Sequence record: OQ427096.1 | Reading direction: 5' to 3' (one strand) | Length of the DNA stretch: 64,000 nucleotides | Part shown: positions 47,554-64,000 of the stretch, one piece after another | Layout: each line of letters opens with the position of its first letter | Numbering within the stretch: the stretch's first letter is position 1 | Notes under the pieces: generated by a model | Seen by the model: only the letters and a program-made list of their open reading frames with translations | Database searches by the model: none | Told to the model about the DNA's origin: nothing | Translations under genes and position numbers: made by a program

Positions 47554-47572
47554 AGGCGCTCCAGCGCCTTTT
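47554..47572 (+). terminator. Intrinsic terminator followed by promoter TTGATA-N16-TATAAT (47576-47603)
   Basis: AGGCGCT-CC-AGCGCCT-TTT. Confidence 0.55.
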
Positions 47573-47626
47573 CGGTTGATACGAAACCATACATCGTTAT
47601 AATCAGCAAAAGAAAGGAGTTTTCTT

Positions 47627-48676
47627 ATGCAGCATGATCTCGCAGTTTTCATCGGGCGTTTCCAGCCTTTCCATCTGGGCCACCTCCACGCTATTGAGGA
47701 AGGCCTCAAGCTCGCCAAGAAGGTTCTCATCCTGATCGGTGACACCGGTGGTCCTCGTGGCCTCAAGAATCCCTGGACCGCAGAAGAGCGGAAGCAGATG
47801 ATTCTGGATTCGCTAGGCACCTACCAGCGCGAACTCGTAATGTTTGACATTGCATACGACATGCCGTCCAACACGGAATGGGCTGGTCAGATTCAGAGCA
47901 TTGTCAGCAACGCCTCGAACTGGCATAAGCTGCCCAGCGTAATTCTGATCGGTCACGAGAAGGACGCGTCGAGCTTCTATCTCAAGATGTTCCCGCAGTG
48001 GAAGCACATCGACACCGGCTTCGAAGAACTGGAAAGCGGACTTCTCCGCAAGTACAACGCCACCGACATTCGCAAGATGGTCTGGACGAACACGCTGCAT
48101 TACGCAACGGGTCTCCTGCATCCGACCACGCTGACCTACCTGGTCAATCACATCAAGCACAACCCAGCTATCTATGAAGAGTTTCTCGAGGAATACGGCG
48201 CCATACAGGCTTATCGCAAGGCGTGGGCAGGTTCGCCGTTCCCGCCGATGTTCGTCACCACTGACTGCGTGGTTATCCAGAGTGGCCATATTCTTCTGAT
48301 CAAGCGAGGCGACCGACCTGGAAAGGGTCTTTGGGCGTTGCCCGGTGGCTTCCTGGATCAGACCGAGTCCATCCAGGATGGTGCTCTGCGTGAACTGAAG
48401 GAAGAGACGAACATTCACCTGCAGGATGATGTGCTTCGCCGTTGCATTGTTCGCACTTTCGTCCATGATCGTGCAGGCGGTGTCAGTGAAGAAGACCGTG
48501 GCAGAATCATTACGCATGTGCATGTCGTCAAGCTTGCCGACGGGAAGCCACTGGCCAAGGTCAAGGGCGGCGATGACGCAGCCGAAGCACGCTGGGTTCC
48601 GTTGGGCGAAATCAACTACCGTGAGATCTTCTCCGACCACGGAAAGATCATTGACCGCGCCCTGAGTGGCGTCTGA
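47627..48676 (+). CDS. nadM: Bifunctional NMN adenylyltransferase / Nudix ADP-ribose pyrophosphatase
   Basis: FIGRFQPFHLGH; Nudix box WALPGGF.DQTE....ALRELKEET; GGDDA. Confidence 0.96.
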   Translation: MQHDLAVFIGRFQPFHLGHLHAIEEGLKLAKKVLILIGDTGGPRGLKNPWTAEERKQMILDSLGTYQRELVMFDIAYDMPSNTEWAGQIQSIVSNASNWHKLPSVILIGHEKDASSFYLKMFPQWKHIDTGFEELESGLLRKYNATDIRKMVWTNTLHYATGLLHPTTLTYLVNHIKHNPAIYEEFLEEYGAIQAYRKAWAGSPFPPMFVTTDCVVIQSGHILLIKRGDRPGKGLWALPGGFLDQTESIQDGALRELKEETNIHLQDDVLRRCIVRTFVHDRAGGVSEEDRGRIITHVHVVKLADGKPLAKVKGGDDAAEARWVPLGEINYREIFSDHGKIIDRALSGV

Positions 48677-48685
48677 GGAATTATC

Positions 48686-49144
48686 ATGAAGGACGTTATC
48701 AACGGCTTTTTCGAAGAAGCAGAACGTTTGCAGGCTCTGGCAGAAGAACAGCGCAGCAAGGCTGCTGCAATCCTGACACCGCTGTTTGATCTCCAGCATC
48801 GGCTTGCATGGTTTGTTCACTGCGAGCCTGAGTTCAAAGAACTGGAAAAGTGGTATCGCAAGCCGCGTGATAGGTTCGCAACCAATGCGAACCGTCAGCA
48901 TTCTTACTACACTTTCGACGGAAGTTTCTACGATCTCTGTGAATGGAGTGACGGTGACTCGGCTGACTCCATTGAGCTGCATCCTATCTTCCTGACAGAT
49001 GCTTCTGAGGAAGAGAAGAAGGAAGTAATTCGACAGGCATATCGTGCTGATATCGCAGCTGTAGAAAATCAGAAGCAACGCGCGAAAGAAGCTGAGCTGG
49101 AAAAGGCTCGCAAGCTTCTCGCTGAAAACGGTGTGTCTTTCTAA
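48686..49144 (+). CDS. Hypothetical protein
   Basis: GAGG RBS. Confidence 0.65.
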   Translation: MKDVINGFFEEAERLQALAEEQRSKAAAILTPLFDLQHRLAWFVHCEPEFKELEKWYRKPRDRFATNANRQHSYYTFDGSFYDLCEWSDGDSADSIELHPIFLTDASEEEKKEVIRQAYRADIAAVENQKQRAKEAELEKARKLLAENGVSF

Positions 49145-49192
49145 GGCACACTGTTAGACTATAATCACACCAAACGTAGAAAGGAGTTTTCT

Positions 49193-50638
49193 ATGATTTT
49201 CAATCCGATCCTTGCAACAGACAGCTACAAGTTCTCGCACTTCATGCAGTACCCGAAGGGTACCACTATCGTCAAGAGTTATGTCACGGCGCGTGGCAGC
49301 AAGATTCCTGGCGTTACCGCAGTGGTTTGTGCTGGTCTGCAAATCTTCATTCACGAATATCTCAGCAAGCGCGTGACCAAGAATCACGTCGATCAGGCTG
49401 AGGCATTCTGTGCCAAGCACGGCGTTCCTTTCAACCGCGAAGGTTGGGACCTGATCGTCAACGATCACAACGGCTACCTGCCTGTCGAGATTCGCTCGGT
49501 TGAGGAAGGTACGCCGGTGCCGCTCAATGAGCTTATGATCTCCGTAATCAACACTGACGAGCGTCTGCCGTGGGTGACCTCGTATATCGAGACGCTCCTG
49601 CTGAGCTATGTCTGGTATGCCTCGACTGTGGCAACCAAGAGCCGCGAAATCAAGAAGGTCATCAAGCAGTACCTGGACATCACGTCGGACAATGCTGATG
49701 TGGAACTTCCGTTCAAGCTGCACGACTTCGGTTACCGTGGTGCAACTCCTGGCGCAGCTCATGTTGGTGCCTTCGCGCACCTGATCAACTTCATGGGTAC
49801 TGATACCGTCGCCGGCATCGAAGCTGCAATGGAGTACTACGGTTCGGATGTCTGTGGTTACAGCATCTCGGCTTCGGAGCATTCGACGATGACCAGTTGG
49901 GGTCGCGATGGTGAGTTCGATGCCTACCGCAACATGGTTGACTCCTACGCCAAGCCCGGTGCGATCTTCGCCTGCGTGATCGACAGCTACGACACCTTCG
50001 CAGCAATCGATATGTTCTGTGAAGACCGTTGTGCAGGTGGCTCGCTCCTGGACATCGTCAAGAACCGCGGTGCAACCATCGTGCTCCGCCCTGATAGCGG
50101 TGACCCGATCCAGATGCCAATTGACGTCATCAAGTACCTGATGGAAAAGGTCGGCTACGAGATCAACAACAAGGGTTACAAGGTCCTGCCGAGCCATGTT
50201 CGAGTGATTCAGGGCGATGGCATCGATATTGAAGACGTTGAGCACATCCTGGAGACCCTGGTCGAGGATGAAAAGATCAGCGCCTCGAACATCGCATTTG
50301 GCATGGGTGGCGGACTCCTTCAGAAGGTGAACCGTGATACGTTCAAGTTTGCTATGAAGGCGTGCCTGGCATACATCAACGGCGAAAAGGTAGACATCAT
50401 CAAGGATCCGGTCACTGACCCTGGCAAGAAGTCGAAGGCAGGCGACCTGAGCGTCTATCACAATCCGGAAACTGGAGAGTGGAAGACCATCACTGAAGGT
50501 TCGCTGGATTCGTTCGCTTTCAACAAGCCTTCGAGCAATTGGTATCGCAAGGACTATGTTGTCTATAGCCACTACGGTCGCGATACTTTCTTCGACTATG
50601 TGGACATGGATACTGTTCGTAGGAATGCTGCTCTTTAA
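49193..50638 (+). CDS. nadV: Nicotinamide phosphoribosyltransferase
   Basis: TDSYKFSH, LHDFGYRG, SISASEHS, VIDSYD, RPDSGDP, IQGDG, FGMGGGLLQ, RDT, KKSKAG. Confidence 0.97.
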   Translation: MIFNPILATDSYKFSHFMQYPKGTTIVKSYVTARGSKIPGVTAVVCAGLQIFIHEYLSKRVTKNHVDQAEAFCAKHGVPFNREGWDLIVNDHNGYLPVEIRSVEEGTPVPLNELMISVINTDERLPWVTSYIETLLLSYVWYASTVATKSREIKKVIKQYLDITSDNADVELPFKLHDFGYRGATPGAAHVGAFAHLINFMGTDTVAGIEAAMEYYGSDVCGYSISASEHSTMTSWGRDGEFDAYRNMVDSYAKPGAIFACVIDSYDTFAAIDMFCEDRCAGGSLLDIVKNRGATIVLRPDSGDPIQMPIDVIKYLMEKVGYEINNKGYKVLPSHVRVIQGDGIDIEDVEHILETLVEDEKISASNIAFGMGGGLLQKVNRDTFKFAMKACLAYINGEKVDIIKDPVTDPGKKSKAGDLSVYHNPETGEWKTITEGSLDSFAFNKPSSNWYRKDYVVYSHYGRDTFFDYVDMDTVRRNAAL

Positions 50639-50673
50639 GGGCAGCTTCCTTCATAATTACTATGGTGAGATGA

Positions 50674-51058
50674 ATGATTCTCAAGAGCGAAATCAGAATG
50701 TCCAAGGCTGAAATTGAAAGCCTCATCCTTGATCACCTGAAAAATAACAACAAGCACAATCTCAAGCTTGGTCGGGTAAGCTTCTCTGTTCGTGAGTCTG
50801 ACGACCACTATGGTGGCTACACTCCAGCTGATCTTGAAGGTGCAACTATTTCTGTGGAACTGGAGCTTGACGATGGAAGAGAGGATCGAAGATAAGATTT
50901 TGGCTTATCTGCGCGGTGAGGCGGACTACGATGTTACCCAACTGCTGCGTGATGCAAGAAACGAGATCGAAAAACTGAGAGCACGTGCGGTTGATCTTAG
51001 CTGGGCAGCGGACGTTGCCAATGATCGTGCAGATGCGTTCGATCCGAGGTACAACTAA
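50674..51058 (+). CDS. Two small hypothetical proteins (50674-50895, 50873-51058)
   Basis: Coupled ORFs. Confidence 0.55.
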
Positions 51059-52374
51059 TGTCACTGACCAACCTGTTTTCTTCAGGGATTGAATACCGGA
51101 AGCGCGTCATGGTGCTGGTCACCAAGCGCATGCTGAATCCGAAACGGGGTGGTGGAGTCTCTACGTTTGTGCGAGGCATTGCTAAGTCTATGCCTGACGA
51201 CACACTCGTAGAGATTCATTGCGTTGGACCAGATAATCTTGATGTCTATGAGATTGATCATCCGAATGTCGTAACCTATGGTTATCCTCAGATGGTGAAG
51301 ATCAAGGCAGAGGAGCCAGGCATCTTCCAGCGCATCATGATCAACTTCGATCAGATCGAAGAATTCCGCCACGCCTTGAACAAGTCGGTGTTCACGGAAG
51401 AGAAGCTCTATGATGCGATTGTGACTACCTGCCCCGAGTCGGCGCTGGCTTGCATTTCCTTTGGTGCGATGATCGAGCCATTCAATGTCATCTACACCAC
51501 GCACCACGGCTTGATGTCTGACAGCCTGAGCAAGGTTCCTTTCGATGACGCTGTTATCTACTTCGCCAACGAAGTGATTCCGAAGTCTGGCTTTGTCACC
51601 ACTGTGACTCAGACACCTCTGAATGCTGAGTGGCTGCAGGAAAAGCATGGCGTCGTAGTTGATCACGTGATTCCTCTGCTACCTGACGAGCTTCCTCCTT
51701 TTGTTGATATGGCAGGTAAGGAAGGCGCACTGTTCATCGGCAAGTACGAGACTGGCAAACGACCTGAGCTCTTTGTCGAGATGTGCAAGCAGACTGGCAT
51801 CAAGGGTAAGGTCATGTGCGGTGGTATCAAAGCTCCCGACGCATGGCACAAGGCTTTCAAGGAAGCTGGAGTTACCAACTACGAGATCCGTCAGAACCTG
51901 CAAGGCAAGGAAAAGGAAGACTTCATCGCATCTGCAAAGTTCACTTTCGTTTCCTCGCAGAACGAGTCGTACGGTTACCTGGCACTGGAAGGTCTGTTCA
52001 ACGGTCCTACCATGATTGCAGACAGCCGATGGGCGAAGTTCTGGGAAGGCTATGGCGCAACTCTGTTTACCAAAAAGAACATGGCTGAGGTGGCTAACCG
52101 TCTCAATGAGATGACTCTTTGGGACAACACCAAGCTGGTAAAGATGCTGGATGATGCTGAGAACAAGTGGGTTGACGTGATCTGTAATCGAAAGAATTAC
52201 AACACCAAGCCTAACTCTTCGATGCTCAAATATGTGACGCCGGAATGGCAGACTCTTGCTGACCTGGCAAAGGCGCGCGATGTTCGTAGCCTGTCAAGCG
52301 GAGACTACAAGCCTCTGTTTGATCACTGCGAGATCGTCCACAATGACATTGAATCAAAGGTGCGACGTGTCTGA
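51058..52374 (+). CDS. Second GT-B (GT4-like) glycosyltransferase
   Basis: GGGVSTFV, LFIGKYETGKRPELF, SQNESYGYLALEG. Confidence 0.82.
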   Translation: MSLTNLFSSGIEYRKRVMVLVTKRMLNPKRGGGVSTFVRGIAKSMPDDTLVEIHCVGPDNLDVYEIDHPNVVTYGYPQMVKIKAEEPGIFQRIMINFDQIEEFRHALNKSVFTEEKLYDAIVTTCPESALACISFGAMIEPFNVIYTTHHGLMSDSLSKVPFDDAVIYFANEVIPKSGFVTTVTQTPLNAEWLQEKHGVVVDHVIPLLPDELPPFVDMAGKEGALFIGKYETGKRPELFVEMCKQTGIKGKVMCGGIKAPDAWHKAFKEAGVTNYEIRQNLQGKEKEDFIASAKFTFVSSQNESYGYLALEGLFNGPTMIADSRWAKFWEGYGATLFTKKNMAEVANRLNEMTLWDNTKLVKMLDDAENKWVDVICNRKNYNTKPNSSMLKYVTPEWQTLADLAKARDVRSLSSGDYKPLFDHCEIVHNDIESKVRRV

Positions 52375-52639
52375 TATCACTGTAGGTGAAATGAAGAAGT
52401 GGCTTGAGCAATTTGCTGATGACACTACGCTGACGTTCGAAGGAAACTTCGGACCAGGCTTGCCTCAAATTGATCTGACCAACGATCAATTCCAGTATAA
52501 CTCATGGGAGGCCTGGTCTTACTCACCAGCCAGGCAGCCCTGGACTTATACGCCTACCGAGGAAGCTAAGTCGAGAGGTAATACGACTAAGACCTACCCG
52601 TATCATCCTGCGAACATCACGCTCGGTGAACAATCGTGA
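52367..52639 (+). CDS. Hypothetical protein
   Basis: GTG start with AAAGG RBS. Confidence 0.55.
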   Translation: MSDITVGEMKKWLEQFADDTTLTFEGNFGPGLPQIDLTNDQFQYNSWEAWSYSPARQPWTYTPTEEAKSRGNTTKTYPYHPANITLGEQS

Positions 52640-52800
52640 ATGACGGTAAAGCAGTTACGCCTCAAGAATTGAAAGCGTGGATGTTCAAGTTCTTCGGTGA
52701 TCACTACGGCCTTCTTGAGTGTAAGAAGGCCCTTGCCATGAATGAAAGAACGAGTGACGCTGTAAAGTGGCTAATCAAATCAGACCTGTTTCGGATCTGA
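52636..52800 (+). CDS. 54-aa protein resembling the EF-Ts N-terminal (UBA-like) domain (absent from the ORF track)
   Basis: VTPQELK...GLLECKKAL......AVKWLIKS. Confidence 0.6.
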   Translation: MNDGKAVTPQELKAWMFKFFGDHYGLLECKKALAMNERTSDAVKWLIKSDLFRI

Positions 52801-52815
52801 TTCCTAGCATCCCTG

Positions 52816-53100
52816 TTGACGAATGAATTAATCAATTACAATCCTTGCATGAAAATTGTCCAATTTAAGAACGGTAGGTTTGGTGTTCGCCGAGGATCCT
52901 TCTGGGATTACGGTTGGTGGACACATCAATTCCTAGATTATGAAGGTACCTGGGTAAAGAAGCAGGGATACAATATCGGTTCAGTGGAATGCTATTCCAA
53001 GGAAGAAGCTGAAAGGCGACTCAAGGATTACATTGAATCGGAAGCTTCATATCAGGCCTTTAAGGCATCTGCAAATGATATGGGTAAGCCTGTCAAGTGA
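52816..53100 (+). CDS. Hypothetical protein
   Basis: Open frame with typical phage composition; start uncertain. Confidence 0.55.
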   Translation: MTNELINYNPCMKIVQFKNGRFGVRRGSFWDYGWWTHQFLDYEGTWVKKQGYNIGSVECYSKEEAERRLKDYIESEASYQAFKASANDMGKPVK

Positions 53101-53104
53101 GCTA

Positions 53105-53500
53105 CACCGTCGGGACTAATCCACCGACGCTAATTTATATCATGAACAATAGGTTGTCCAACTAGCCGTCGGCTAAGCGTAGTCGCGACGTGAGATAGAG
53201 TGGGCAAGGCGAGCAATCGTCGGAAGTGCGTAATGTGAGAATAAGGAACCGAGAGGTTCTAAAGTATGACCTGCTCTGCCACACGGCAACAGGTGTTAGG
53301 CAAGTTGATTACTAACTGAATTCTTGTCTATGGCGTGAATCCCGCAAAGGGACCAAAGTGCAATTATAGGGCGATACCGTTCACCTCGTCCTGCTGGGAA
53401 GCAGATTGCAAGTTTGAGTGGTGATGGTATGGACGCAGTTCCCTTTTCTCATCGTCGCACTTTTGGTGGTAATAGCCAAAGTGTGGCTCCAATAAACCGC
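53105..53500 (+). ncRNA. Candidate large structured non-coding RNA, family unknown
   Basis: ~400 nt with no ORF in an otherwise gene-dense genome; many helices, several with GNRA loops. Confidence 0.65.
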
Positions 53501-53522
53501 AATTCTTTTAAAAACATATTTT

Positions 53523-54044
53523 ATGAATCAATTTCGATATGCAGGTATAGGATCTCGTGATACTCCTGTCTCCTTAAAACAAACGATGATGGACATAGCT
53601 TACTTCTTAGCGTATGAAGCTAATGCTATTCTCGTATCCGGTGGAGCTCGAGGTGCTGATTCGTTCTTTGAGGAAGGATGCGATCGTGCAGGTGGTAACA
53701 AAGAGATCTGGTTGCCAGAAGCAGGCTTCAATGGAAGCAAGTCTAAGTTGATTGGTGCATCGAAGGATGCCTATATCGTAGCTGAGCGATATGTAGGTCA
53801 TTGGAAGAACTGTAAGGCATGGGCACGAGCAGCACACGCACGAAACTGTCATCAGGTTCTCGGTGCCGATCTCCTCACTCCCGTTTCTTTCGTAGTGTGC
53901 TGGACACCTGGAGGTGAGAGAGTTGGTGGCACTGCTACAGCGATTTCTATTGCAGAAGATAAGGGCATTCCTATTCTCAACCTTGGATCGAAAGACTGGT
54001 CTGAGACAGAAATTTCTGATTGGCTAGAAATCCGGCTAAATTGA
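53523..54044 (+). CDS. SLOG-superfamily (DprA/YspA-like) nucleotide-binding protein
   Basis: YAGIGSR.TP, LVSGGARGADS.FE, RN..QVLG, GGTATA. Confidence 0.8.
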   Translation: MNQFRYAGIGSRDTPVSLKQTMMDIAYFLAYEANAILVSGGARGADSFFEEGCDRAGGNKEIWLPEAGFNGSKSKLIGASKDAYIVAERYVGHWKNCKAWARAAHARNCHQVLGADLLTPVSFVVCWTPGGERVGGTATAISIAEDKGIPILNLGSKDWSETEISDWLEIRLN

Positions 54045-54098
54045 CCTTTCTAGGTACTGTCTGTAGACTGTATGGACTAAGGTGATTGGGAGTTAGTC

Positions 54099-54670
54099 AT
54101 GGGTTACGGAACACGTCCGAACAATTTCGGTGGAAACATCAGAACTTTCCAGCCTGACAATACGAAAGATGTGCTGTACATCGACACGACTTTTTCGTCG
54201 GTCACGCTGAAGGAACTCATGGAGAAGATCCGTGAACACTTCGGCAGTGATGATATCGAGAAATTCGATATCGAGGCTCAGTACATCCACACGGATTGCC
54301 TGGGCTACGACTGTTATGACCCCGGTGACTACTCCAGCTTCATCGTCATCACTCGCACAGGAATCCTGTAATGGCTGCTCGATTCAGTCGTCACGCGAAG
54401 CCTCTCTACCGTATCAACCAGCACGGTGAGCTCTACAAGGCGAGTGAAGAATTCAAGACCACCATCCGTCGAGCTGGAGTCTGGAACCGCCCTGCATGTT
54501 TCCGTTGGTGGGCTGAAGGATGCCGAGAGATCAACACCTGGGTATTCGATTCCCAGGGTCAGCATCGTCTCATTGTTGGATACGATCCTGAGACTGACCT
54601 TCTGTATCTCGGGCGCACCTTGACCGAAGAACGCCACCTCCCCAACCGTTTTAAGAATCGAGACATCTGA
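54099..54670 (+). CDS. Two hypothetical proteins (54099-54371, 54371-54670)
   Basis: Behind promoter TTGACC-N17-TAGACT (54041-69). Confidence 0.6.
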
Positions 54671-55617
54671 TGACTGCTCTGCTGATTGGCTCCAACGCAC
54701 TTCGCGCACACGGCATCGCTGTTGAGCGCAGGAACCTGGACATGGACTTCATTGCTACGATGGATTCCATCAAGGCGATGATCGATCGGAACAAGACGCG
54801 CTTCGTCAAGATTCAGCACAGCGAAGATGCGAACCATCTGTTCATGTTCCCTCGTAATGGGAACGACGCCATCTTCGATATCGAAATCGCATGGCTCGAT
54901 TCTGTCAGTGATACCCTCATTGACATCGTCCTGAACAACGGCCTCTACAAGATGACCGAGGAGGGCTACTACGCCGTTTCTCCGTCGGTTGTGCTGGCAC
55001 TCAAGCTGTCGCACAAGTACAAGAAAAACTCGCGTCACTTCCTGAAAACGATGCGCGACATTCAGATGCTCAAGGGACTTGGCTACAAGGTTCCGAAGTG
55101 TCTGAGTGAGTGGCTCAAGGATCGCAAGAAGTGGACCTACGACTATAAGCATCCCAAGTTGGAAGGTGGTGTGACCAAGGCTGACTTCTTCAAGGACGAT
55201 GGCATTCGCTATGTCTACGATCACGACAGCATCCACGTCGCAGTGAAACATCTGCACCAGCCCGCCTATCGCTACTTCCAGCCTGACGGTGAGGAAGTGG
55301 GCACGTCGAAGGAAGACTTCTTCGCTCAGCCGCGTGAGGTACAGCTTCTGGCAGTCCTCGAGGAAAGCTATGTGCTGAGTCTCGAGCGCGCCATTGTTCC
55401 GTTCAACTTGAAGACTATCGAGCAGCGGAAGAAGGCTTTTGACACTGCTCTGGAAAAGGTCTGCACGAGCATCACGTCTGGTTGGTTCCGGAAGTTTGCC
55501 TGGGATAACTTTGACGAAGTGAATGACCTGTATAATCAGGAATATGTGGACCGCTTCTGGCTCGAAGTCGAAAGCGGCAATGTGAAGCCCTACGTGAAGG
55601 AAGAAAATGCTTACTGA
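54670..55617 (+). CDS. Minimal pol-beta-type nucleotidyltransferase with helical C-terminal domain
   Basis: LLIGSNAL...NLDMDFI (GS, DxD), FDIEI. Confidence 0.75.
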   Translation: MTALLIGSNALRAHGIAVERRNLDMDFIATMDSIKAMIDRNKTRFVKIQHSEDANHLFMFPRNGNDAIFDIEIAWLDSVSDTLIDIVLNNGLYKMTEEGYYAVSPSVVLALKLSHKYKKNSRHFLKTMRDIQMLKGLGYKVPKCLSEWLKDRKKWTYDYKHPKLEGGVTKADFFKDDGIRYVYDHDSIHVAVKHLHQPAYRYFQPDGEEVGTSKEDFFAQPREVQLLAVLEESYVLSLERAIVPFNLKTIEQRKKAFDTALEKVCTSITSGWFRKFAWDNFDEVNDLYNQEYVDRFWLEVESGNVKPYVKEENAY

Positions 55618-55852
55618 AACTGCAAAGGCGTCTATTATCCAAAAGGTCGAAGAGATCAAGGCGCTGATGGATGAAGCAAAGCTGATCGGGCGCATTGACG
55701 TCTCAGGTCGCGATGCATACCCAGGCGATTTCGTGATCGACGAGATCCGCACCATTGCTCCGGCGGGCTCTGAGCATTGGTCGCACAGTTCGTGCTGGGA
55801 TGATGAACCTGTCCCTTATGACCCGCCCTCCTGGAATGCGAGTAACTGCTAA
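55607..55852 (+). CDS. Small protein with two W-x-x-S-x-C motifs
   Basis: ...WSHSSC...WNASNC*. Confidence 0.7.
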   Translation: MLTETAKASIIQKVEEIKALMDEAKLIGRIDVSGRDAYPGDFVIDEIRTIAPAGSEHWSHSSCWDDEPVPYDPPSWNASNC

Positions 55853-56043
55853 TGGCTAAAGATGATTTCGATCAGCGAGTTGAAGTAATCAAGCTCCTTG
55901 TCAATGAACTGGATAAGGAGTTGTCTGAACTCAATGTCAGGCACAATGTCGATTACAAGATTGACATGCAAGTCCAAGACAAGCATGGTTCTTACATCGT
56001 AGGCACATCGGAGTCCAGCGACTGGTCTGCGAGTTGGTGCTGA
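55852..56043 (+). CDS. Small protein ending WSASWC
   Basis: Helical N-terminus, motif at the C-terminus. Confidence 0.7.
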   Translation: MAKDDFDQRVEVIKLLVNELDKELSELNVRHNVDYKIDMQVQDKHGSYIVGTSESSDWSASWC

Positions 56044-56061
56044 TAACTGTCCTATAAAGGA

Positions 56062-56322
56062 ATGATAATGAAGAAGATTCTGTTGGTTGCTGTTCTGGCT
56101 GCCGTTGTTGGACTGTCGGGTTGTACCGATGCAGAACGCGCAAGCTGGGGCTCGCTGGGTGAGCAGGCAAAGGTCACCTGTTACAGCGGTGGTCAGGTCA
56201 TCAAGGAATACGAGTCCACCGGTAAGGTGATGAAGCTCGATGGTGACGGCTTCGCCTTCAAGAACAAGGAAACTGGCAAGTTCGTTCGCGCCTTCGCCGA
56301 CTGTCTGGTGGAAGAGAAATGA
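56062..56322 (+). CDS. Lipoprotein
   Basis: MKKILLVAVLAAVVGLSG-C lipobox. Confidence 0.78.
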   Translation: MIMKKILLVAVLAAVVGLSGCTDAERASWGSLGEQAKVTCYSGGQVIKEYESTGKVMKLDGDGFAFKNKETGKFVRAFADCLVEEK

Positions 56323-56549
56323 TCAGTCCTTGTGATGGCGGCGGAAGTGTCGACCCGGGTCGCGCCAAGTTTGAGGAAGCTGTCTTCCGGCAGTATTTCA
56401 TCAAGCATGTTGGAAGTGATCTGAGGATGAAGCCAGGTATCGTCAACAAGGCTGAGTTCTGCAAGCGGGACGAAAATGGTAACTACGTGCGCGAAGAAGT
56501 AAGCGCAATGTGGTTTGGTTGGAAACTTTATCAGAAGGAAAACGTGTAA
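56319..56549 (+). CDS. Hypothetical protein
   Basis: ATGA-coupled. Confidence 0.6.
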   Translation: MISPCDGGGSVDPGRAKFEEAVFRQYFIKHVGSDLRMKPGIVNKAEFCKRDENGNYVREEVSAMWFGWKLYQKENV

Positions 56550-56728
56550 TGACCGTCGAGAAAGAACGTCATCAGAAGATCGCCGCACTCCTGGACAGTG
56601 CTTCCAAGCAGCTGGAAGAGGCACGCCAGTTGGCAGGCAACGACACCTATCACTGGTCTGGTCCTACCTATGGTATGGGTGGCTGGATCGAGTCTGGCGA
56701 ATGGCAGGCATCTAGCCATTCTTGCTGA
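56549..56728 (+). CDS. Small protein ending GPTYGMGG...WQASSHSC
   Basis: Paralogue of 56739-56963. Confidence 0.72.
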   Translation: MTVEKERHQKIAALLDSASKQLEEARQLAGNDTYHWSGPTYGMGGWIESGEWQASSHSC

Positions 56729-56738
56729 GGAATGAGAA

Positions 56739-56963
56739 ATGGAATACGCTGATTTTGAAAGCCGTAAGAAGCGCATCGAGCAGTTGATTGGTGAGGCTGA
56801 GGGCCTGCTCGAGGAAGCTCGCGAAATGTCCGATGGTCTCTTTGATGAAGGAGCAACGCGCTCCTGGCAGGCAAAGCCGTCATTCAGGTTTGAAGGCCCT
56901 ACGTATGGTATGGGCGGGTCGCTGCAGGATGGCGAATGGTTTGCATCGAGTCAGTCGTGCTAA
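56739..56963 (+). CDS. Small protein ending GPTYGMGG...WFASSQSC
   Basis: Paralogue of 56549-56728; GAGG RBS. Confidence 0.72.
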   Translation: MEYADFESRKKRIEQLIGEAEGLLEEAREMSDGLFDEGATRSWQAKPSFRFEGPTYGMGGSLQDGEWFASSQSC

Positions 56964-56978
56964 AAGAGTGAAAGGGTA

Positions 56979-57011
56979 GGGACATTGGCACTTCGGTGCC
57001 TTTGTCCTTTT
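56979..57011 (+). terminator. Intrinsic terminator
   Basis: GGACA-TT-GGCAC-TTCG-GTGCC-TT-TGTCC-TTTT. Confidence 0.8.
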
Positions 57012-57033
57012 AGGTAAACCAAAGGAATATCAT

Positions 57034-57561
57034 ATGCAACGTGACTTCATCGAAACCTGGTCTGGCGTCAACCTATACATGCCTGACCCAGATCCGGAAT
57101 CCATCCTCATCGAAGACATTGCGCACGCTCTGTCGAAGGTGTGTCGTTTTGCCGGTCATGTGGATCGCTTCTACTCTGTAGCTGAGCACTCCATCCACGT
57201 CTCCTACGCTGTACCTCCGGAACATTCTCTGCAAGCACTTCTGCATGATGCGACTGAGGCTTACCTGTGTGACATTCCTACTCCGTTCAAGCGGATGATT
57301 CCTGCCTATGCGGAACTGGAAGACAATCTATGGGCAGTGATTGCTGAAAAGTTTGGCGTGCCGTTCAAACTGCACGAGACTGTCAAGCTGGCGGATCGAA
57401 TGCTGCTCCTGTCGGAACGTGATGCACTCAAGGAACACTCCAAGCGCCAATGGCCTGCGGAATACGAGAACCATCGTCGTTGGGAAGGCTTCTATGAAAT
57501 GAACCTGACCCAGGAACAAACTGCTCGTGTCTTCCTCAAGCGATTTTCAGCTCTTCGGTAG
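57034..57561 (+). CDS. HD-domain phosphohydrolase (YfbR/YfdR-like)
   Basis: IEDIAHALS..CRFAGH...YSVAEHS, LLHDATEAY..DIPTPFK. Confidence 0.88.
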   Translation: MQRDFIETWSGVNLYMPDPDPESILIEDIAHALSKVCRFAGHVDRFYSVAEHSIHVSYAVPPEHSLQALLHDATEAYLCDIPTPFKRMIPAYAELEDNLWAVIAEKFGVPFKLHETVKLADRMLLLSERDALKEHSKRQWPAEYENHRRWEGFYEMNLTQEQTARVFLKRFSALR

Positions 57562-57599
57562 AGTAAATACTGGGAAGTAAACCCCAACATGGAATTGAA

Positions 57600-58644
57600 A
57601 TGAGTACCGAAGAAAAAGTGAGTGTGCTGCCTCTGCCGGAAGATCCTGCTTACCTCCAGTGGCTGCGAAAGGAAGGCTTTGAACTCGAAAGCACTGTCCC
57701 GATGGAATCAGACAGCATTGTCTGGGTTCGTAAGACAAAGTATGGCGTGCCACGTTGTCTGATGAATGGTGTTGTCCTTGTCGAGATCGTGAAGACCGGC
57801 GACCAGTTTAGCATGGGCGTTCGTGCCTCGGCTAAGAATTACTGGGGTGCGGCTTCCATCTATGGCATTGATGAAGAGAACCTTGTCAGGCTGGGTCGCC
57901 AGTACGAACAGCGAGTGGTGGACGCATGGCGGGAATTGAGCGCCTAAGAGAGCAGATTGTCGATTACCTTATCGCGAATAAGGAGGCAATCTTGATGACG
58001 CAGCAGTCTCAGTTCTGTGGACCTTGTGGTGGCATGAAAGTCACCACAGTCTACCGTAACCCAGATTGTGGTCAAATCGGAGTCTGGCTAGATGATTACA
58101 GACGAGAAACGGGCACTTGAGCCCCGAGATCGAGAGTACATCATTTTCGTTCTAGATGGAGCATACGCTCATGGTGAAAGTCTATCTGAGCACCTGCATC
58201 TGTTCGACGAATTTGAGATTACTCGTGCACAACGAAACGAAGTTATCTTAGCATCCGACTTTGGTCAAGATGAGGATCTTGTTTCAGCAATCACTTTATT
58301 TGGGTGACCTATGTCTTATACTTTTACGGACGGCTTGAAAGACGTCATCAACGGTAATTTTTCAAACGGTGGTGAGTCCAATCGCAGGTACGAAATGTGC
58401 AAGGCTTGCCCATTGTTCAATTCTGTCGTGCTCACATGTGGTTCTTGCGGATGCTTCATGCCCGCGAAAACCAAACTCGTTAACGCAACATGCCCTGAGG
58501 GCAAATGGTAAAATGACCTACCGAGACACGTATTTCTTCGACTTGTGCCGTGAGGCTGGGTTCGACGTAACCGATCCACACGATTGGGTCGAAATGAGTA
58601 TTTTCGCTAAGGAAGTGCTGATCGAAGAATCGGAAGAAGACTGA
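57600..58644 (+). CDS. Five small hypothetical proteins (57600-57947, 57926-58120, 58092-58307, 58311-58511 Cys-rich CPEGKW zinc finger, 58513-58644)
   Basis: Coupled ORFs; CKAC...CGSCGC...CPEGKW. Confidence 0.6.
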
Positions 58645-58710
58645 GGCTTGTTCTTTCACAGTGAATCTATAAACTATGATTTGTGGGCAGTGTGCCCCGA
58701 GGTGAAATGA

Positions 58711-58992
58711 ATGTTCAAGTGTCCTGTTTGTGGTGATTACTCCAATTCGGCTGCTTCATTGGAGTCGCACGCTGCTTGGAAGCACGGTCGACGCATTCGA
58801 GCTGAAAACTATCGTGCGCCATCGCATGATATGACACCGTCAAGTACTGGTGACGCACTTGTTGGTTTGGCTGTAGGATATGCTTTGTCATCGATGTTTG
58901 ATTCATCGAGTAGCGATTACAGTTCGTCATCGTCGGATTGGTCCGGTGGTGGCGGAGACTCTGGAGGCGGTGGCGCTTCTGGGGACTGGTAA
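58711..58992 (+). CDS. C2H2 zinc-finger protein with a Gly/Ser-rich tail
   Basis: CPVC...HAAWKH; GGGGDSGGGGASGDW. Confidence 0.7.
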   Translation: MFKCPVCGDYSNSAASLESHAAWKHGRRIRAENYRAPSHDMTPSSTGDALVGLAVGYALSSMFDSSSSDYSSSSSDWSGGGGDSGGGGASGDW

Positions 58993-59014
58993 AAAGTTGT
59001 AAAGATATAGTGGT

Positions 59015-59380
59015 ATGAAGCCAATCGAAAGGTTGCTTGGACGCGGGTTCGATTCCCGCCAGGTCCACCAAGAACACATTTGATCGCCTTAGCGGGCTTT
59101 CTCTAGTCAGAGCGGATCGTCCTTCGGTGTCTGACAAGATGGGAAGCGTGGGCAAGAGTAAGATGACGTGAGCACCACGGCAAGTGTGTTGTTGATGGGC
59201 CTGCCCAGGTTTCGACAGGCAGGTAATTAGAAACGAGCAGACCACTGTTGAGAGTATCCACTCAACTGAATAAAGATGCAAACTAGCTAAATGTCGCTGC
59301 TAACGACGCCGATTACTCCGTAGCTCGCTACGCCTAATCGCTCAGTCCTCGCCCCTACTGAGTTCCTCATTGGGGCCCCT
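59015..59380 (+). ncRNA. ssrA: Circularly permuted (two-piece) tmRNA
   Basis: Acceptor piece ending GGACGCGGGTTCGATTCCCGCCAGGTCCACCA (CCA at 59070) precedes coding piece GGGCCTG...TTCGAC (59197); G3:U70 pair; ANDA-type tag frame; downstream pseudoknot. Confidence 0.9.
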
Positions 59381-59427
59381 AATTTCATTCTTCGAGAGAT
59401 TAAATACGAAGAAAAGGCACACGAACA

Positions 59428-59823
59428 ATGACTGATAACGAACAACCAAAGCAGAGAATCAATCCTCGCATCTACGGATGGTTGTCCGATATCATGACCT
59501 GGGTCGGAGTGCTGTTCCTTGGTGTCATCCTCGGCAGCGCAATCACGCAGTCGATTGCCATCAAGGACCGTGATCTGTTGGTTTCATCCTACACCCAGAC
59601 GATCGCAACAAAAGATCAGTTGATTGAATCTTTGTCGGTGACAACGGTGAAGGCTGCTGACGTTGCACTCAATCAGAGTACGACTGAGGTAACCAAGGCA
59701 CTTGATACAATGTCTGAGCGCGATAAGACGCTGCGTGACATTGAGAAGCGAATTGAAACAAAGCAGCGCCAAGACGCAGCAAAGAAGGCTGCTGAGGAGC
59801 GTAAACTGCGAGGTCTCAAATGA
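59428..59823 (+). CDS. Inner-membrane spanin-like protein (second pair)
   Basis: Single TM plus coiled coil; GATTAAATA box at 59398-406. Confidence 0.7.
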   Translation: MTDNEQPKQRINPRIYGWLSDIMTWVGVLFLGVILGSAITQSIAIKDRDLLVSSYTQTIATKDQLIESLSVTTVKAADVALNQSTTEVTKALDTMSERDKTLRDIEKRIETKQRQDAAKKAAEERKLRGLK

Positions 59824-60032
59824 GAATTCTCGTCCTGTTGTTAGCACTTGTTCTCGCTGGATGTAAGCACGTTCCTTTGGATTTGACGGAACCGTGTTAT
59901 GTGCCACAAAAGACCACCGAGTCGGTTGATGAAGCTGTAAGGCTTGCCAATGACCGTCACGATGCTCTTGTGGAGTGTAATGCGAAACTAGAAAAGATCA
60001 GAACGATCTTAGACCCAAAGGCCAGTCAATGA
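59820..60032 (+). CDS. Outer-membrane lipoprotein spanin-like protein (second pair)
   Basis: LAG-C lipobox, two further Cys, ATGA overlap with the upstream TM gene. Confidence 0.75.
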   Translation: MRILVLLLALVLAGCKHVPLDLTEPCYVPQKTTESVDEAVRLANDRHDALVECNAKLEKIRTILDPKASQ

Positions 60033-60556
60033 GTTTTGAAACGTACCTGAAAGAATCAGCAGCAGCTGAGGAAGCACACAAACTGGGATTGTCCGCAGCC
60101 GGTTATGGCCTTTGGCGCGACAAGACCGGTAAGGTGGTGAAGAAGACCGTAGATGATAAACTTGTGGACGTTCGTGGCTCTGAGGCGAACCTGAAGCATC
60201 ATCACACCAACATTCCTCAGAACCGCGAAGGCAACCATGCAGAGCACGATCAGTCTTCGGACATTGTCTCTGCACATGAGACACCTGGAACATTCCGCGA
60301 AAGCGAAGTGACCAAGTATCACATCAACGAACACTCTGCGGTACATCCTGACAAGGCTGGAGAGCTGCACAACGCATTGGTTGGCGCAGGCTATAAGCAT
60401 TCTCCTTCGGCGTTTGGTCAGATGTATCAAAAAGGTAAGACCTCGGTGATGATCTCCAACCGTCCAGAGATTAGCGCAAAGCGCGGCGGAAAGAACGATC
60501 ATCACAGTGTTCTAATTCGTACCGATCATGTGGCAAAGAAGAAGCCTAAGAAGTAA
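60029..60556 (+). CDS. Probable internal head protein, His-rich
   Basis: N-terminal MSFETYLKE capsid-targeting-like motif. Confidence 0.6.
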   Translation: MSFETYLKESAAAEEAHKLGLSAAGYGLWRDKTGKVVKKTVDDKLVDVRGSEANLKHHHTNIPQNREGNHAEHDQSSDIVSAHETPGTFRESEVTKYHINEHSAVHPDKAGELHNALVGAGYKHSPSAFGQMYQKGKTSVMISNRPEISAKRGGKNDHHSVLIRTDHVAKKKPKK

Positions 60557-60568
60557 ACCTTTGAGGAT

Positions 60569-61433
60569 TTGATTATGAGCAGGCTGGAAGATTTTGTTAT
60601 GCCGGTAGGGACCGAAGAGATTCTCTTCATTGATGGCGAGCATCGTGTGGTAAAGATGACCGTCATTGATCGCCGTGAAGCAGGTATTAATCTGTTCCAC
60701 AATTTTCATATCCGTATGTTGCAGGATGCACATTTCATCTATGGTTTGAAAAAGAAAGAGGTTCTAAAGTCTCGTTGGGGTCACATGACACCTGATGAAT
60801 CTTTTGACCTTGCTCAGTCACTTAGCAGGATCGCGCTGGACCTCGGTCTGGTAGTTGGCAATGGAGTGAGGATTTAATTATGTGCGTTGTTTCGATGATT
60901 GGTGACTCGTTCCAGGATCGTTGGAAGGATCGTCTTCCGAATGATTGGACCATTCCGGCAATGCCGATGCCTTCGCAGCCTATGGCACCTCCGTTCAAGG
61001 AGCGCCGCATTGATGTATCGCATCCGTTCCAGGCGATCAGTCGCGTTGAGTTTGACCTCCTGAAAAAGGAAGTCGAAATCATGAAGGACCTTCTGGAGCG
61101 TGCTATCAAGTACGACAAGGACAACAATGAGCCTCATTGCGAGACGGAGAGCAAGATCGCATTCCTCAAGCAAGTGGCAAAGGCTGTTGGCGTTGACCTT
61201 GAAGAAGTCTTCGGTAAATAACAATGAAGAGCTTTTTTGACGAACAGGGTAGCTTCAATGAGGACGCCCGACAGTTCACAAAAGACGCGCAAGAGATCCT
61301 AAGGCCATTAATGCAGAAATATGCCGGTGCCGGATTTAGCTCGCGTGAAATAGTTTACCTCATTTCAGATGTGGCTTCGATTGAAGAGATCTACATCCGC
61401 CAGGTAAAGAGAATCAGAGATAAGCGTCCTTAG
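60569..61433 (+). CDS. Three hypothetical proteins (60569-60877, 60880-61221, 61224-61433)
   Basis: Closely spaced ORFs; the last stop codon lies inside tRNA-Val. Confidence 0.6.
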
Positions 61434-61499
61434 ATCAGTTGGTAGATCATCTGCTCGACACGCAGAAGGCCACAGGTTCAAGTCCTGTAGGACGCACCA
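61424..61499 (+). tRNA. tRNA-Val(GAC) with C33
   Basis: GCGTCCT/AGGACGC stem, loop TCGACAC, TTCAAGT T-loop, encoded CCA. Confidence 0.9.
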
Positions 61500-61505
61500 A
61501 GTTTT

Positions 61506-61583
61506 GCCTTAGTAGAGAATTGGTAGATCGGCTCCGCTCAAAACGGAGTGTCATTGTCGGTTCGAGTCCGACCTGAGGCACCA
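61506..61583 (+). tRNA. tRNA-Leu(CAA) with an unusually short variable region
   Basis: GCCTTAG/CTGAGGC, loop CTCAAAA, TTCGAGT, CCA. Confidence 0.88.
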
Positions 61584-61585
61584 AG

Positions 61586-61765
61586 ATGACAAACGAAGAA
61601 AAGATCGCTGCAAAGGCAGCAGAAGTAGTACACTACGAAGGAGTCCTTGAACGTTACGGTTCGGGTCGCTGGCTTGACATGGGTCGCCGTCACCTGGCTG
61701 AATTGAACAGGGAACTTCAAGAGTTACGCTCTCAAAGTATTGATGGTGATACGCCGCCCTCGTAA
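61586..61765 (+). CDS. Possible 59-aa ORF between tRNAs, ending inside tRNA-Thr
   Basis: MTNEEKIAAK...; GAGG of the tRNA-Leu 3' stem lies 7 nt upstream. Confidence 0.45.
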   Translation: MTNEEKIAAKAAEVVHYEGVLERYGSGRWLDMGRRHLAELNRELQELRSQSIDGDTPPS

Positions 61766-61802
61766 CGCGGATAAGACAGTTCAAGTCTGTCTGAGAGCAC
61801 CA
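61728..61802 (+). tRNA. tRNA-Thr(CGT)
   Basis: GCTCTCA/TGAGAGC, loop CTCGTAA, C31:C39 mismatch, CCA. Confidence 0.88.
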
Positions 61803-61808
61803 AAACCT

Positions 61809-61884
61809 GGCTATGTGGGTGAGCGGTTTAGCCGACGTCCTCATAAGGCGTTTCACACTGGTTCGAATCCAGTCATAGCCACCA
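61809..61884 (+). tRNA. tRNA-Met(CAT), elongator type (Ile2 not excluded)
   Basis: GGCTATG/CATAGCC, loop CTCATAA, CCA. Confidence 0.88.
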
Positions 61885-61893
61885 ATTGAAACG

Positions 61894-61920
61894 AGCCCTG
61901 TTCATTCAGGGCTTTTCCTT
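61894..61920 (+). terminator. Terminator after the tRNA cluster
   Basis: AGCCCTG-TTCATT-CAGGGCT-TTTCCTT. Confidence 0.7.
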
Positions 61921-61933
61921 GGCTGGTCAGGTA

Positions 61934-61996
61934 TAAGTCCTTGATACTCTATTGTTCATAGTGGGTGTCCTGTATTATAACCACTATAGCTTGTGG
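61934..61996 (+). promoter_or_regulatory. nrdA upstream region: IHF-like site, TTGTTC -35 and tandem NrdR-box-like sites
   Basis: TAAGTCCTTGATA (61934-46); CCACTATAGCTTGTGG (61981-96) plus a half-matching box 32 bp upstream (61949-64). Confidence 0.55.
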
Positions 61997-62039
61997 GTAA
62001 ATAAAAACCCCGTCATATTGAGGAAGTCAGGTGTAAGGC

Positions 62040-64000
62040 ATGGGCAGAAAAGAAATCAACGTAACAAAGAGAAACGGCAAGCGTGAGCCGTATGATGTGG
62101 CAAAGATTCAACGCCAGATCGAATACGCATGTGATGGGATTGCTAATGTATCGCAGTCCATGATTGAACTCTCGATGAACCTCGAGTTGTTTGACGGGAT
62201 CAAGACATCTGACATTGATGAGCTGGCTATCCGAGCAGCCGTGAACCTGATCCTCAGCGAAGAGGGTCACACCAACTACCAATACGTTGCAGGTCGTCTG
62301 GCATCATACGCTCTCCGCAAGGAAGTCTATGGTCAGTATGAAGTGCCTTCGCTGTTCTCGATTGTGAAGAAGAACGTAGCCAAGGGCCTCTACTCGGATG
62401 AACTGCTGACCTGGTACTCGGAAGATGAGTGGAACCTCATTGAGACCTTTGTTGACCACACCAAGGATGAACGCTTGTCTCATGCTGCAATTCAGCAGTT
62501 GGTAGACAAGTATCTGGTTCGCAATCGCTCCACAAAGGAATACGTTGAGACCCCTCAGATTCGCTACATCGTAGCTGCGGCAACGGCAATGCACGCTGAG
62601 CCTGCAAAGCAGCGCATGAAGCGAATCAACGAATACTACAAGCAGGCTTCCAATGGCGAATTCACCCTCCCAACTCCTGTCCTTGCCGGTCTTGGCACAC
62701 CAACTAAGCAGTTCTCAAGCTGTGTCCTACTTCGTTCTGACGACACTCTCGACTCTATCTTCGCTACTGGCGAGATGGTGGCAAAGTATTCGGCAAAGCG
62801 AGCTGGTATTGGGCTTGAAATCGGTCGTCTTCGCCCCGCCGGTGCACCTATCCGCGGAGGCGAGATTGCTCATACAGGCTTGACCCTCTTCATCAAGAAG
62901 TGGTTCAGTGATATGCGTAGCTGCTCGCAGGGTGGCATCCGCAATTCGTCTGCGACACTCACCTACCCGATTTGGCACTACGAGTTTGAGGAACTGATCG
63001 TTCTGAAGAACAACCAGGGTACAGAAGAGAATCGTGTTCGTCACTTTGACTACTCAGTTGTCACCTGCAAGTATCTATGGAATCGTTTCCGTAATCAGGA
63101 GATGATGACCTTCTTCGATCCGAATGAAGTTCCTGACCTGTACGAAGCATACTACCGTGATCAGGCTGAGTTTGTTCGTCTCTACGAGAAGTATGAGAAG
63201 CAGGATGGACTGCGCAAGCGCCAGCTCAATGCAGCAGATGCCTTCGGTGCATTCCTCACTGAACGCTCAGACACCGGTCGCATCTTCGAGGTCTACATCG
63301 ACAACGTGATTGATCAGGGTCCGGTAGATTCCCAGACATGGCCTATCTATCAGTCAAACCTGTGTCAGGAAATCTTGCTACCTACGCGTCCGTTCCAGCG
63401 TTTGGAAGATGAAGAAGGTCGTATCGCACTCTGCACTCTGGGTTCGATCGTGCTGGGCAAGTTCAAGAAGCCTCAGGATATGCGAGGCGCATGCCGTACT
63501 CTGGTTCGCAGCCTCGACAACTTGCTGTCCTATCAGATCTTCCTGTCACCACAGGCTGCGAATGCAAATGAAGACTTCCGTCCTCTGGGCATTGGCATCA
63601 CTGACCTTGCACACTGGCACGCTCAACGTGGCTACACCTACGGTCAGCCTGAAGCACTTGCTGAGTTTGCAAAGTGGATGGAGCACATTCACTACTATTG
63701 CATCGAGGCTTCGATTGAACTAGCCGAAGAGCGTGGACCGTGTAAGGAATGGAAGAACACTTCGTATGCAGAAGGCATTCTGCCTATCGACAAGCGTTCA
63801 CCAAACCTGGATGAAGTCCACAAGATTGAGTTGACTCTGGACTTCGATGCTCTACGTGAGCGTGTTAAAGTTTCGGGCATCCGTAATGGCCTCCTGCAGG
63901 CAACGGCGCCAGTTGAAAGCTCGTCGGTTGTGGTTGATTCGTCGAATGGTATGGCTCTGCCTAAGGCACTGATCTCTACCAAGGAATCCAAGGGTAGCTC
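62040..64000 (+). CDS. nrdA: Class Ia ribonucleotide reductase large subunit with ATP cone (truncated at the window end)
   Basis: VTKRNG ATP cone, TLPTPVLAG, FSSCVL, GIRN, KNNQG, QSNLCQE, LCTL, RPLGIG. Confidence 0.97.
   Translation, partial: MGRKEINVTKRNGKREPYDVAKIQRQIEYACDGIANVSQSMIELSMNLELFDGIKTSDIDELAIRAAVNLILSEEGHTNYQYVAGRLASYALRKEVYGQYEVPSLFSIVKKNVAKGLYSDELLTWYSEDEWNLIETFVDHTKDERLSHAAIQQLVDKYLVRNRSTKEYVETPQIRYIVAAATAMHAEPAKQRMKRINEYYKQASNGEFTLPTPVLAGLGTPTKQFSSCVLLRSDDTLDSIFATGEMVAKYSAKRAGIGLEIGRLRPAGAPIRGGEIAHTGLTLFIKKWFSDMRSCSQGGIRNSSATLTYPIWHYEFEELIVLKNNQGTEENRVRHFDYSVVTCKYLWNRFRNQEMMTFFDPNEVPDLYEAYYRDQAEFVRLYEKYEKQDGLRKRQLNAADAFGAFLTERSDTGRIFEVYIDNVIDQGPVDSQTWPIYQSNLCQEILLPTRPFQRLEDEEGRIALCTLGSIVLGKFKKPQDMRGACRTLVRSLDNLLSYQIFLSPQAANANEDFRPLGIGITDLAHWHAQRGYTYGQPEALAEFAKWMEHIHYYCIEASIELAEERGPCKEWKNTSYAEGILPIDKRSPNLDEVHKIELTLDFDALRERVKVSGIRNGLLQATAPVESSSVVVDSSNGMALPKALISTKESKGS

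Follow-up and report, generated by a model that had tools for sequence, protein, structure and literature searches.

Do positions 59,015 to 59,380 of a large phage genome encode a working tmRNA of the circularly permuted, two-piece form, and what would such an RNA do for the phage that carries it? An earlier note, made from the letters of this DNA, had read the locus as a phage-encoded two-piece tmRNA, and we here follow up that reading computationally. The window (the whole stretch of 64,000 nucleotides that was analysed) corresponds to record positions 62001-126000 of OQ427096.1, and its bases 45000-64000 are 100% identical to Xanthomonas phage X1 (OQ427096.1, 200,058 bp). X1, which originates from soil or a cave, has as its host the plant pathogen X. 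campestris pv. campestris 8004. It is a large, lytic, T4-like phage whose nearest relative is phage BUDD, and both have been grouped with the Stenotrophomonas-phage genus Menderavirus (PMC13384950). Our comparisons suggest, with a probability that we put at roughly 0.85, that this lytic phage has at the locus a functional ssrA gene, which encodes a two-piece, beta-type tmRNA.

Both searches that the earlier note had proposed as checks, with ARAGORN and with the Rfam model of permuted tmRNA, were positive. ARAGORN called a permuted tmRNA (label tmRNA*) at 58978-59428 with the tag VAANDADYSVARYA*, and RF04321 (tmRNA_permuted) matched over the whole model (1-213) with 76.6 bits (E = 6.5e-13), against a gathering score of 47 bits. 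A pattern describing the permuted arrangement had a single match in the window and none in 100 shuffles, a result beyond chance. The standard one-piece model (RF00023) matched nowhere in the window, and the gene order is not the colinear one: as had been read from the sequence, and as the tmRNA* label of ARAGORN confirms, the CCA end (59070) precedes G1 of the other half (59197). The locus thus has the permuted gene order, the score, the tRNA-Ala-like domain and the tag frame after PK1 expected of RF04321 members; it lacks the hydrophobic-Ala-Ala degron, which is typical of the family and not strictly defining.

The gene lies on the plus strand, and its two pieces could be delimited from the RF04321 alignment and pair tables. 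The acceptor piece (the 3' half of the tRNA-like domain) spans 59003..59070; its 5' end is placed near 59003 by comparison with Menderavirus, where the homologous P2d starts ~7 nt after the end of a tRNA-Leu. It contains the 5' strand of P2d (59009-13), an invariant internal region of P2 (59014-59032), the 5' strand of P2a (59033-39), the T-arm (59043-47/59055-59, T-loop UUCGAUU), the acceptor 3' strand CAGGTCC (59060-59066), the discriminator A at 59067 (A73) and an encoded CCA (59068-59070). The 5' part of the coding piece (59197..59292) opens with the acceptor 5' strand GGGCCUG (59197-203, G3 being 59199) and continues through a D-loop analogue, GGUUUCGAC, the 3' strands of P2a (59216-22) and P2d (59242-46), and PK1 (stem 1, 59247-52/59261-66; stem 2, 59254-58/59275-79), with a UAAAU motif before the resume codon. 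The stems that the earlier note had drawn across the two pieces are where it had put them: GGGCCTG (59197-59203) pairs with CAGGTCC (59060-59066) over 7 bp including G3:U70, and TTGCTTG (59033-59039) pairs with CAGGCAG (59216-59222) as P2a. The tRNA-Ala-like domain therefore comprises a 7-bp inter-piece acceptor stem with G3:U70, the discriminator A, CCA and a T-arm with GGUUCGAUUCC.

The tag reading frame occupies 59293..59337, and its stop codon, UAA (59335-37), is enclosed by helix 5 (59310-15/59335-40 and 59320-23/59328-31). An H-type pseudoknot 3' of the tag, also part of the initial reading, was found as described: PK2 (59341..59376) consists of CTCAGT/ACTGAG (59341-46/59357-62) interleaved with GCCCC/GGGGC (59351-55/59372-76). 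The coding piece probably ends within the 3' tail (59377..59420), which forms a 7-bp hairpin (59388-94/59407-13) with no U-run after it. Scanning 58300-59700 revealed no sigma-70 promoter and no intrinsic terminator.

Between the two pieces lies an intervening segment of 126 nt (59071..59196), which is expected to be removed in maturation. In the minimum free energy fold this spacer is closed by a 10-bp helix (59073-82/59181-90) that encloses an inner hairpin and is predicted to stack under the acceptor stem, and it ends in a conserved leader GUUGAU (59191-96) directly before G1, where RNase P is expected to cut. A hidden RNA within the spacer received little support, with no Rfam match and a fold z-score of only −1.9. 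The spacer is 96.1% identical between X1 and BUDD, nearly matching the mature parts; this conservation sits oddly with a segment that is simply discarded. Among the matches listed, only 2 of 242 matched loci have a spacer of at least 120 nt, one being that of BUDD.

To ask how this structure has been maintained, we compared three X1-like sequences, namely X1, BUDD and a locus (L369) on metagenome contig JACYYK010037373.1 that was retrieved via a clade-specific motif. All 10 helices pair in each of the three (56/56 pairs standard), with 7 pairs changed on both sides, while control structures slid by 1-3 columns had 37-45% of cells paired; because X1 served as the template for the structure, the percentage paired is inflated, whereas the compensatory counts are unaffected. 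When X1 and BUDD were compared with Menderavirus, 98.2% of cells were paired and 8 both-side changes were found in the tRNA-like domain, P2 and the spacer closing helix, the last of which kept its pairing through 3 such changes. G3:U70 is invariant in all relatives, in an acceptor stem that has 2 compensatory pairs. Covariation supports PK1 and helix 5; stem 1 of PK1 has 3 compensatory pairs, among them G59247C/C59266G (X1 versus BUDD), and in stem 1 of PK2, U59346-A59357 became A-U in L369.

PK2 of Marzo, a Menderavirus phage, has the same topology and an entirely different sequence (CAGGA/UCCUG and CGCCAG/CUGGCG), and where X1 has its 3'-tail hairpin, L369 has one that differs. At the PK1 position of Menderavirus only a hairpin was seen, in a region with no column-by-column alignment to X1. 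The tag frame, its 14-codon length and the position of its stop are preserved in four lineages (X1, BUDD, L369 and Menderavirus). Between X1 and BUDD the tmRNA is 96-98% identical, and 100% over 59273-59423, against 50-93% overall for the flanks (~50% for the upstream ORF and 88-93% for the downstream ORFs). The core of the earlier reading, a phage-encoded, circularly permuted two-piece tmRNA, is thus upheld by ARAGORN, by RF04321 and by covariation.

To which kind of two-piece tmRNA does the gene belong? The best clan model for X1 was RF01850 (beta_tmRNA), which scored 56.5 bits (E = 1.7e-16), below the gathering threshold of 84 bits. The relatives of X1 pass this threshold (Menderavirus with 92-95 bits, Marzo having 94.6; Xanthomonas phage JGB6 with 94.7; Stenotrophomonas phage DLP_6 with 103.7), and we therefore regard the X1 gene as a divergent beta-type relative and not as a certified member. 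Beta-type features, taken here from the Rfam model, are evident in X1: the permuted order, the tRNA-like domain, UAAAU before the tag, a CCACC-AAG trailer and a hairpin after P2 are all shared with the betaproteobacterial two-piece tmRNA (Sharkady and Williams 2004, as cited in PMC11915505 and PMC9004378), and RF01850 is the best subtype model for X1 and its relatives. Apart from the score, X1 departs from this type in the middle of P2, where the pairing of the Rfam model (CAAU/AAAC) does not form, and in being carried by a phage whose host has a one-piece tmRNA. The P2-middle stretch is invariant across X1 and Menderavirus.

The gene of the Menderavirus phages of Stenotrophomonas (Marzo, Bhz51, Yut2/3, Mendera, Moby, IME-SM1 and YB07) is homologous, permuted, syntenic upstream of nrdA and adjoined by tRNAs; its internal P2 region, GUAUGAAGCCAAUCGAAAGG, is identical to that of X1, its PK2 has the same topology, and its 14-codon tag frame begins with VAAND as in X1. 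It differs from the X1 gene in lying directly between tRNA-Leu and tRNA-Thr, whereas five ORFs separate the X1 tmRNA from its tRNAs, which are ~2 kb away, and a 3' hairpin stands in place of the Menderavirus tRNA. Its spacer measures 56-70 nt, compared to 126 nt in X1, and its tag ends in RIAA, compared to RYA. The third X1-like lineage, L369 (JACYYK010037373.1, 4878-5247, minus strand), has a spacer of ~47 nt, and its tmRNA is followed directly by tRNA-Val, tRNA-Leu and nrdA, the last only ~76% identical to nrdA of X1. Since the L369 tmRNA directly adjoins the tRNAs, the five ORFs of X1 look inserted.

Several genes in this part of the window deserve mention in their own right. Directly 3' of the tmRNA, two plus-strand ORFs with a 4-nt overlap (59428-59823 and 59820-60032) resemble a pair of spanin genes. 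The upstream one carries a membrane segment near its N-terminus and gave no family match; the downstream one matches PF23793 (LysC/Rz1-like, E = 2.2e-11) and the Rz-like spanin group phrog_456. The record lists each of them as "hypothetical protein", and only two lysis genes are named in the X1 paper (PMC13384950). A tRNA-Thr(CGU) at 61728-61802 (plus strand), found by ARAGORN and Rfam (47.2 bits), is missing from the GenBank feature table, where a "hypothetical" CDS at record positions 123586-123765 overlaps it. Just upstream of the tmRNA, the plus-strand ORF 58711-58992 has a Gly/Ser-rich C-terminus and no family match, and its nucleotide identity between X1 and BUDD (~50%) is far under that of its neighbours. 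The annotated BUDD counterpart of this ORF extends into the acceptor piece of the tmRNA. We judged this extended CDS to be spurious on the RNA evidence, and likewise a minus-strand ORF of 188 aa at 58715-59281.

The earlier note had taken the permuted form as a clue to the host, since it would suggest alphaproteobacteria, betaproteobacteria or cyanobacteria. This expectation failed: the host is Xanthomonas campestris, of a genus with one-piece tmRNA, and the permuted form is therefore misleading as to the host of X1. A genome scan for the tag ANDDNYG retrieved standard one-piece tmRNAs from three species of the host genus (X. vasicola, X. hortorum and X. arboricola), with the tags ANDDNYGSDFAIAA or ANDDNYGSDYAIAA; that of X. 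vasicola scored 198.4 bits to RF00023. Host and phage RNAs share their function, and the N-terminal motif of their tags is common to both (ANDDNY in the host, AANDADY in X1), whereas the host RNA is in one piece, of 397 nt, with the tag ANDDNYGSDFAIAA. Aligning the two genes retrieved the T-arm alone (33-41 bits), while alignments with other viral two-piece genes (~100-160 bits) extended over both halves of the phage gene. A phage-specific P2/T-arm motif had 0 matches in 185,579 species genomes (one genome per species), and in metagenomes it was found on one contig only, the X1-like JACYYK010037373.1.

Other phages of Xanthomonas and Stenotrophomonas carry related genes. We found unannotated beta-type two-piece tmRNAs in Xanthomonas phage JGB6 (L370, 1172-1580), Stenotrophomonas phage DLP_6 (L371, 1174-1517) and Xanthomonas phage Rb1 (L372, 1140-1568), with the tags VTANDSYFEVALAA, ANDDSFAPMAIAA and ANDDNFRPALRLAA, respectively. 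All three pass RF04321, and those of JGB6 and DLP_6 are above the threshold of the beta model as well. The tmRNAs of X1, BUDD, Menderavirus, JGB6, DLP_6 and Rb1 are mutual best matches, and Xanthomonadaceae-phage tmRNAs fall in one clade (11 of 174 tips, support 0.81) of a tree that is indicative only, being built on ~150 nt. The genomes that carry them range widely in size (X1 and BUDD ~200 kb, Menderavirus ~160 kb, DLP_6 168 kb, JGB6 107 kb and Rb1 91 kb).

The tag of X1 reads GUC GCU GCU AAC GAC GCC GAU UAC UCC GUA GCU CGC UAC GCC UAA, or (V)AANDADYSVARYA*. Its resume codon is ambiguous, being either GUC (the choice of ARAGORN, after the conserved UAAAU motif) or the next codon, GCU; in E. 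coli, the resume codon comes directly after a GUC triplet, by which the first GCU would be the resume codon here. The tag retains the motif AAND..Y, which in E. coli is part of the tag bound by SspB. The tags of L369 (VAANDSDYAVARYA) and Menderavirus (VAANDDSYTVRIAA) have the same frame, length and stop position. The inner residues of the L369 tag differ from those of X1 while its Arg-Tyr-Ala ending is the same, with a synonymous change in the last Ala codon (GCC in X1, GCU in L369), and the ending is thus conserved in three X1-like lineages (X1, BUDD and L369). Among the matches listed, Ala-Ala closes 194 of 229 viral permuted tags, and only those of X1 and BUDD have RYA. Tags of sister phage lineages and of the host end in IAA or LAA, the host ending being AIAA, and the tag of Caulobacter crescentus tmRNA reportedly ends in Ala-Ala.

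Terminal Ala-Ala is the main determinant of recognition by ClpXP, and mutation of either Ala raises KM (PMC7652416); the Arg-Tyr-Ala tag of the X1 lineage is therefore probably a weaker ClpXP degron than that of the host, if E. coli ClpXP can be taken as a guide. A possible, although not the expected, consequence is that the tag does not serve degradation in the usual way: ribosomes would be rescued, and products ending in ...VARYA would escape ClpXP or serve another protease or adaptor, so that truncated infection products would differ in fate from host-tagged ones. Such a change of target would refine the functional-gene reading. It would account for RYA standing in place of AA, and for its conservation in L369, the more distant lineage, as well as in X1 and BUDD, while the inner residues vary, sister phages keeping IAA or LAA and the host AIAA, at the very positions that are key to ClpXP (PMC7652416). 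However, the C-terminal Ala and its carboxylate are still there, Lon, FtsH, Tsp and ClpAP may still recognise the tag, and the RYA ending is found in three genomes only. A broader and more doubtful proposal, to which we give a rather low probability, joins this ending to the distribution of the gene: at least five unrelated Xanthomonas/Stenotrophomonas phage genome types share one beta-type two-piece clade, which might represent a phage-borne gene pool passed among host-sharing phages, in which the X1 lineage would have swapped the Ala-Ala degron for Arg-Tyr-Ala, leading to ribosomes being rescued without the usual host degradation.

How might the functional gene that we favour be matured and used? 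The experimentally established paradigm is the two-piece tmRNA of Caulobacter crescentus, in which, as cited in PMC9004378 (Keiler, Shapiro and Williams 2000), a permuted gene yields a single precursor that is cut into an acceptor and a coding piece, and whose functional proteolysis tag starts with AAND, as that of X1 does. The Caulobacter gene differs from that of X1 in being of the alpha-type lineage, cellular and chromosomal. Modelled on this system, a single X1 precursor would be transcribed, probably by read-through of transcription begun upstream or by use of a phage promoter, and its two halves would pair through the acceptor stem, P2a and P2d, assisted by the spacer closing helix. Host RNase P would cleave before G59197, and 3' tRNA-processing enzymes would trim to the CCA at 59070, releasing the spacer and leaving an acceptor piece of ~65 nt and a coding piece of ~190-220 nt, joined by base pairing. 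In Menderavirus all four ends could come from tRNA-processing enzymes, because the gene is flanked directly by tRNA-Leu and tRNA-Thr.

Following established tmRNA biology, the X1 RNA would be charged by host AlaRS through G3:U70 and A73, and brought by host SmpB and EF-Tu to ribosomes stalled on broken mRNAs; translation would resume on the tag frame and stop at UAA (59335-37), freeing the ribosome. The likely gain for the phage would be added ribosome rescue while host and phage mRNAs are cleaved in infection. A tblastn search with E. coli SmpB against the whole X1 genome, in five pieces, gave a best E of 1.4, and no Xanthomonas or Stenotrophomonas phage appeared in the name and host summaries of the 68 phage SmpB records or among the 25 of the 68 that were listed. 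Since X1 has no SmpB, its RNA must use SmpB, AlaRS and EF-Tu of the host.

This dependence lends some sense to a different and quite unlikely role, in which the phage RNA would compete with host tmRNA for SmpB, AlaRS or ribosomes and so block host trans-translation: X1, without an SmpB of its own, must compete for that of the host, and a tmRNA-like RNA without a CDS in mycobacteriophage DS6A (as cited in PMC11915505) provides a precedent. However, a pure decoy would need none of what is kept in X1 under purifying selection with compensatory changes, namely a full tag frame, resume context, stop, helix 5, PK1 and PK2. The last alternative, a functionless relic, either a decaying copy or an attP-type ssrA fragment from imprecise excision, would be in line with temperate phages often integrating in ssrA and carrying its 3' fragments (general knowledge; PMC9004378), but it is effectively refuted and very improbable, since X1 is lytic and without integrase (PMC13384950), both halves are complete, the gene is better conserved than its flanks and has 7-8 compensatory pairs, the phage-specific P2 motif occurs in 0 of 185,579 species genomes, and the host gene, of the other form, shares the T-arm alone (33-41 bits).

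A functional tmRNA would be in keeping with other contents of the X1 genome, which encodes 34 tRNAs, a CCA-adding enzyme, an RNA ligase and a polynucleotide kinase. Outside the window, OQ427096.1 has the CCA-adding enzyme at 195579-196652, the RNA ligase at 190283-191398, the polynucleotide kinase at 160402-161289 and ~30 more tRNAs at ~136-147 kb. Together, tmRNA, tRNAs and repair enzymes fit a translation-maintenance toolkit, which would suit translation amid damage to mRNA and tRNA. Roles in maintaining hijacked translation have been proposed for the tmRNA of Melnitz-type phages (PMC9004378). Melnitz and the pelagimyophages resemble X1 in that a T4-like phage carries a two-piece tmRNA whose type is mismatched to the host lineage (PMC9004378); they differ in their alpha type, glutamine riboswitch and marine origin, compared to the beta type, lack of a riboswitch match in Rfam and soil or cave origin of X1.

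Two-piece tmRNAs as a kind are already known in phages. The supposition that they are rare among phage tmRNAs did not survive comparison with a published survey, in which 53 of 133 unique phage tmRNAs were two-piece (PMC9004378), and in IMG/VR, two scans with a pattern for the permuted order gave at least 120 matches each. ARAGORN made permuted calls at 229 of 244 loci among the matches listed, a set that takes in the window and six X1, BUDD and Menderavirus loci, and of the IMG/VR contigs sampled, 15/15 matched RF04321 and 14/15 passed the beta model. Homologues of X1 T4-type genes (gp32, gp59, exonucleases, PhoH) lie within a few kb of the tmRNA at 156 of 237 loci among the matches listed, which argues that the IMG/VR loci are real T4-like phage genomes and not host flanks. 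These loci (L007-L243) are environmental viral contigs, many of 140-172 kb, and several have unusually long tags of 28-30 residues, such as ANASKGEVTVSGKGIRFSARTAQRQTLAV.

That such genes are easily missed by annotation, as the earlier note had also held, was borne out: no tmRNA is annotated for X1, BUDD, JGB6, DLP_6 or Rb1 in GenBank, and of the Menderavirus records several lack it while those of Marzo, Bhz51, Yut2 and Yut3 have it. The X1 paper used tRNAscan-SE only and nowhere mentions a tmRNA (PMC13384950). In JGB6 a hypothetical CDS is annotated on the opposite strand over the tmRNA. Marzo also presents the reverse case: ARAGORN calls a "standard" tmRNA with the tag APDLGSDASA (L003, 1752-2069) across a tRNA-Pro/tRNA-Leu pair, which is almost certainly a false positive, as it overlaps true tRNAs and is without Rfam support.

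These results mean that the GenBank record of X1 needs a tmRNA added, as do four other phage records; X1 has been proposed for biocontrol of cabbage black rot, and the gene is missing from its 2026 paper too. They also make the form of a phage tmRNA an unreliable predictor of the host, with a beta-type two-piece gene found in phages of one-piece hosts. For the biology of the X1 lineage, the Arg-Tyr-Ala ending provides a testable handle on whether a phage tmRNA of this kind brings extra rescue capacity only, or an altered fate of the tagged proteins.
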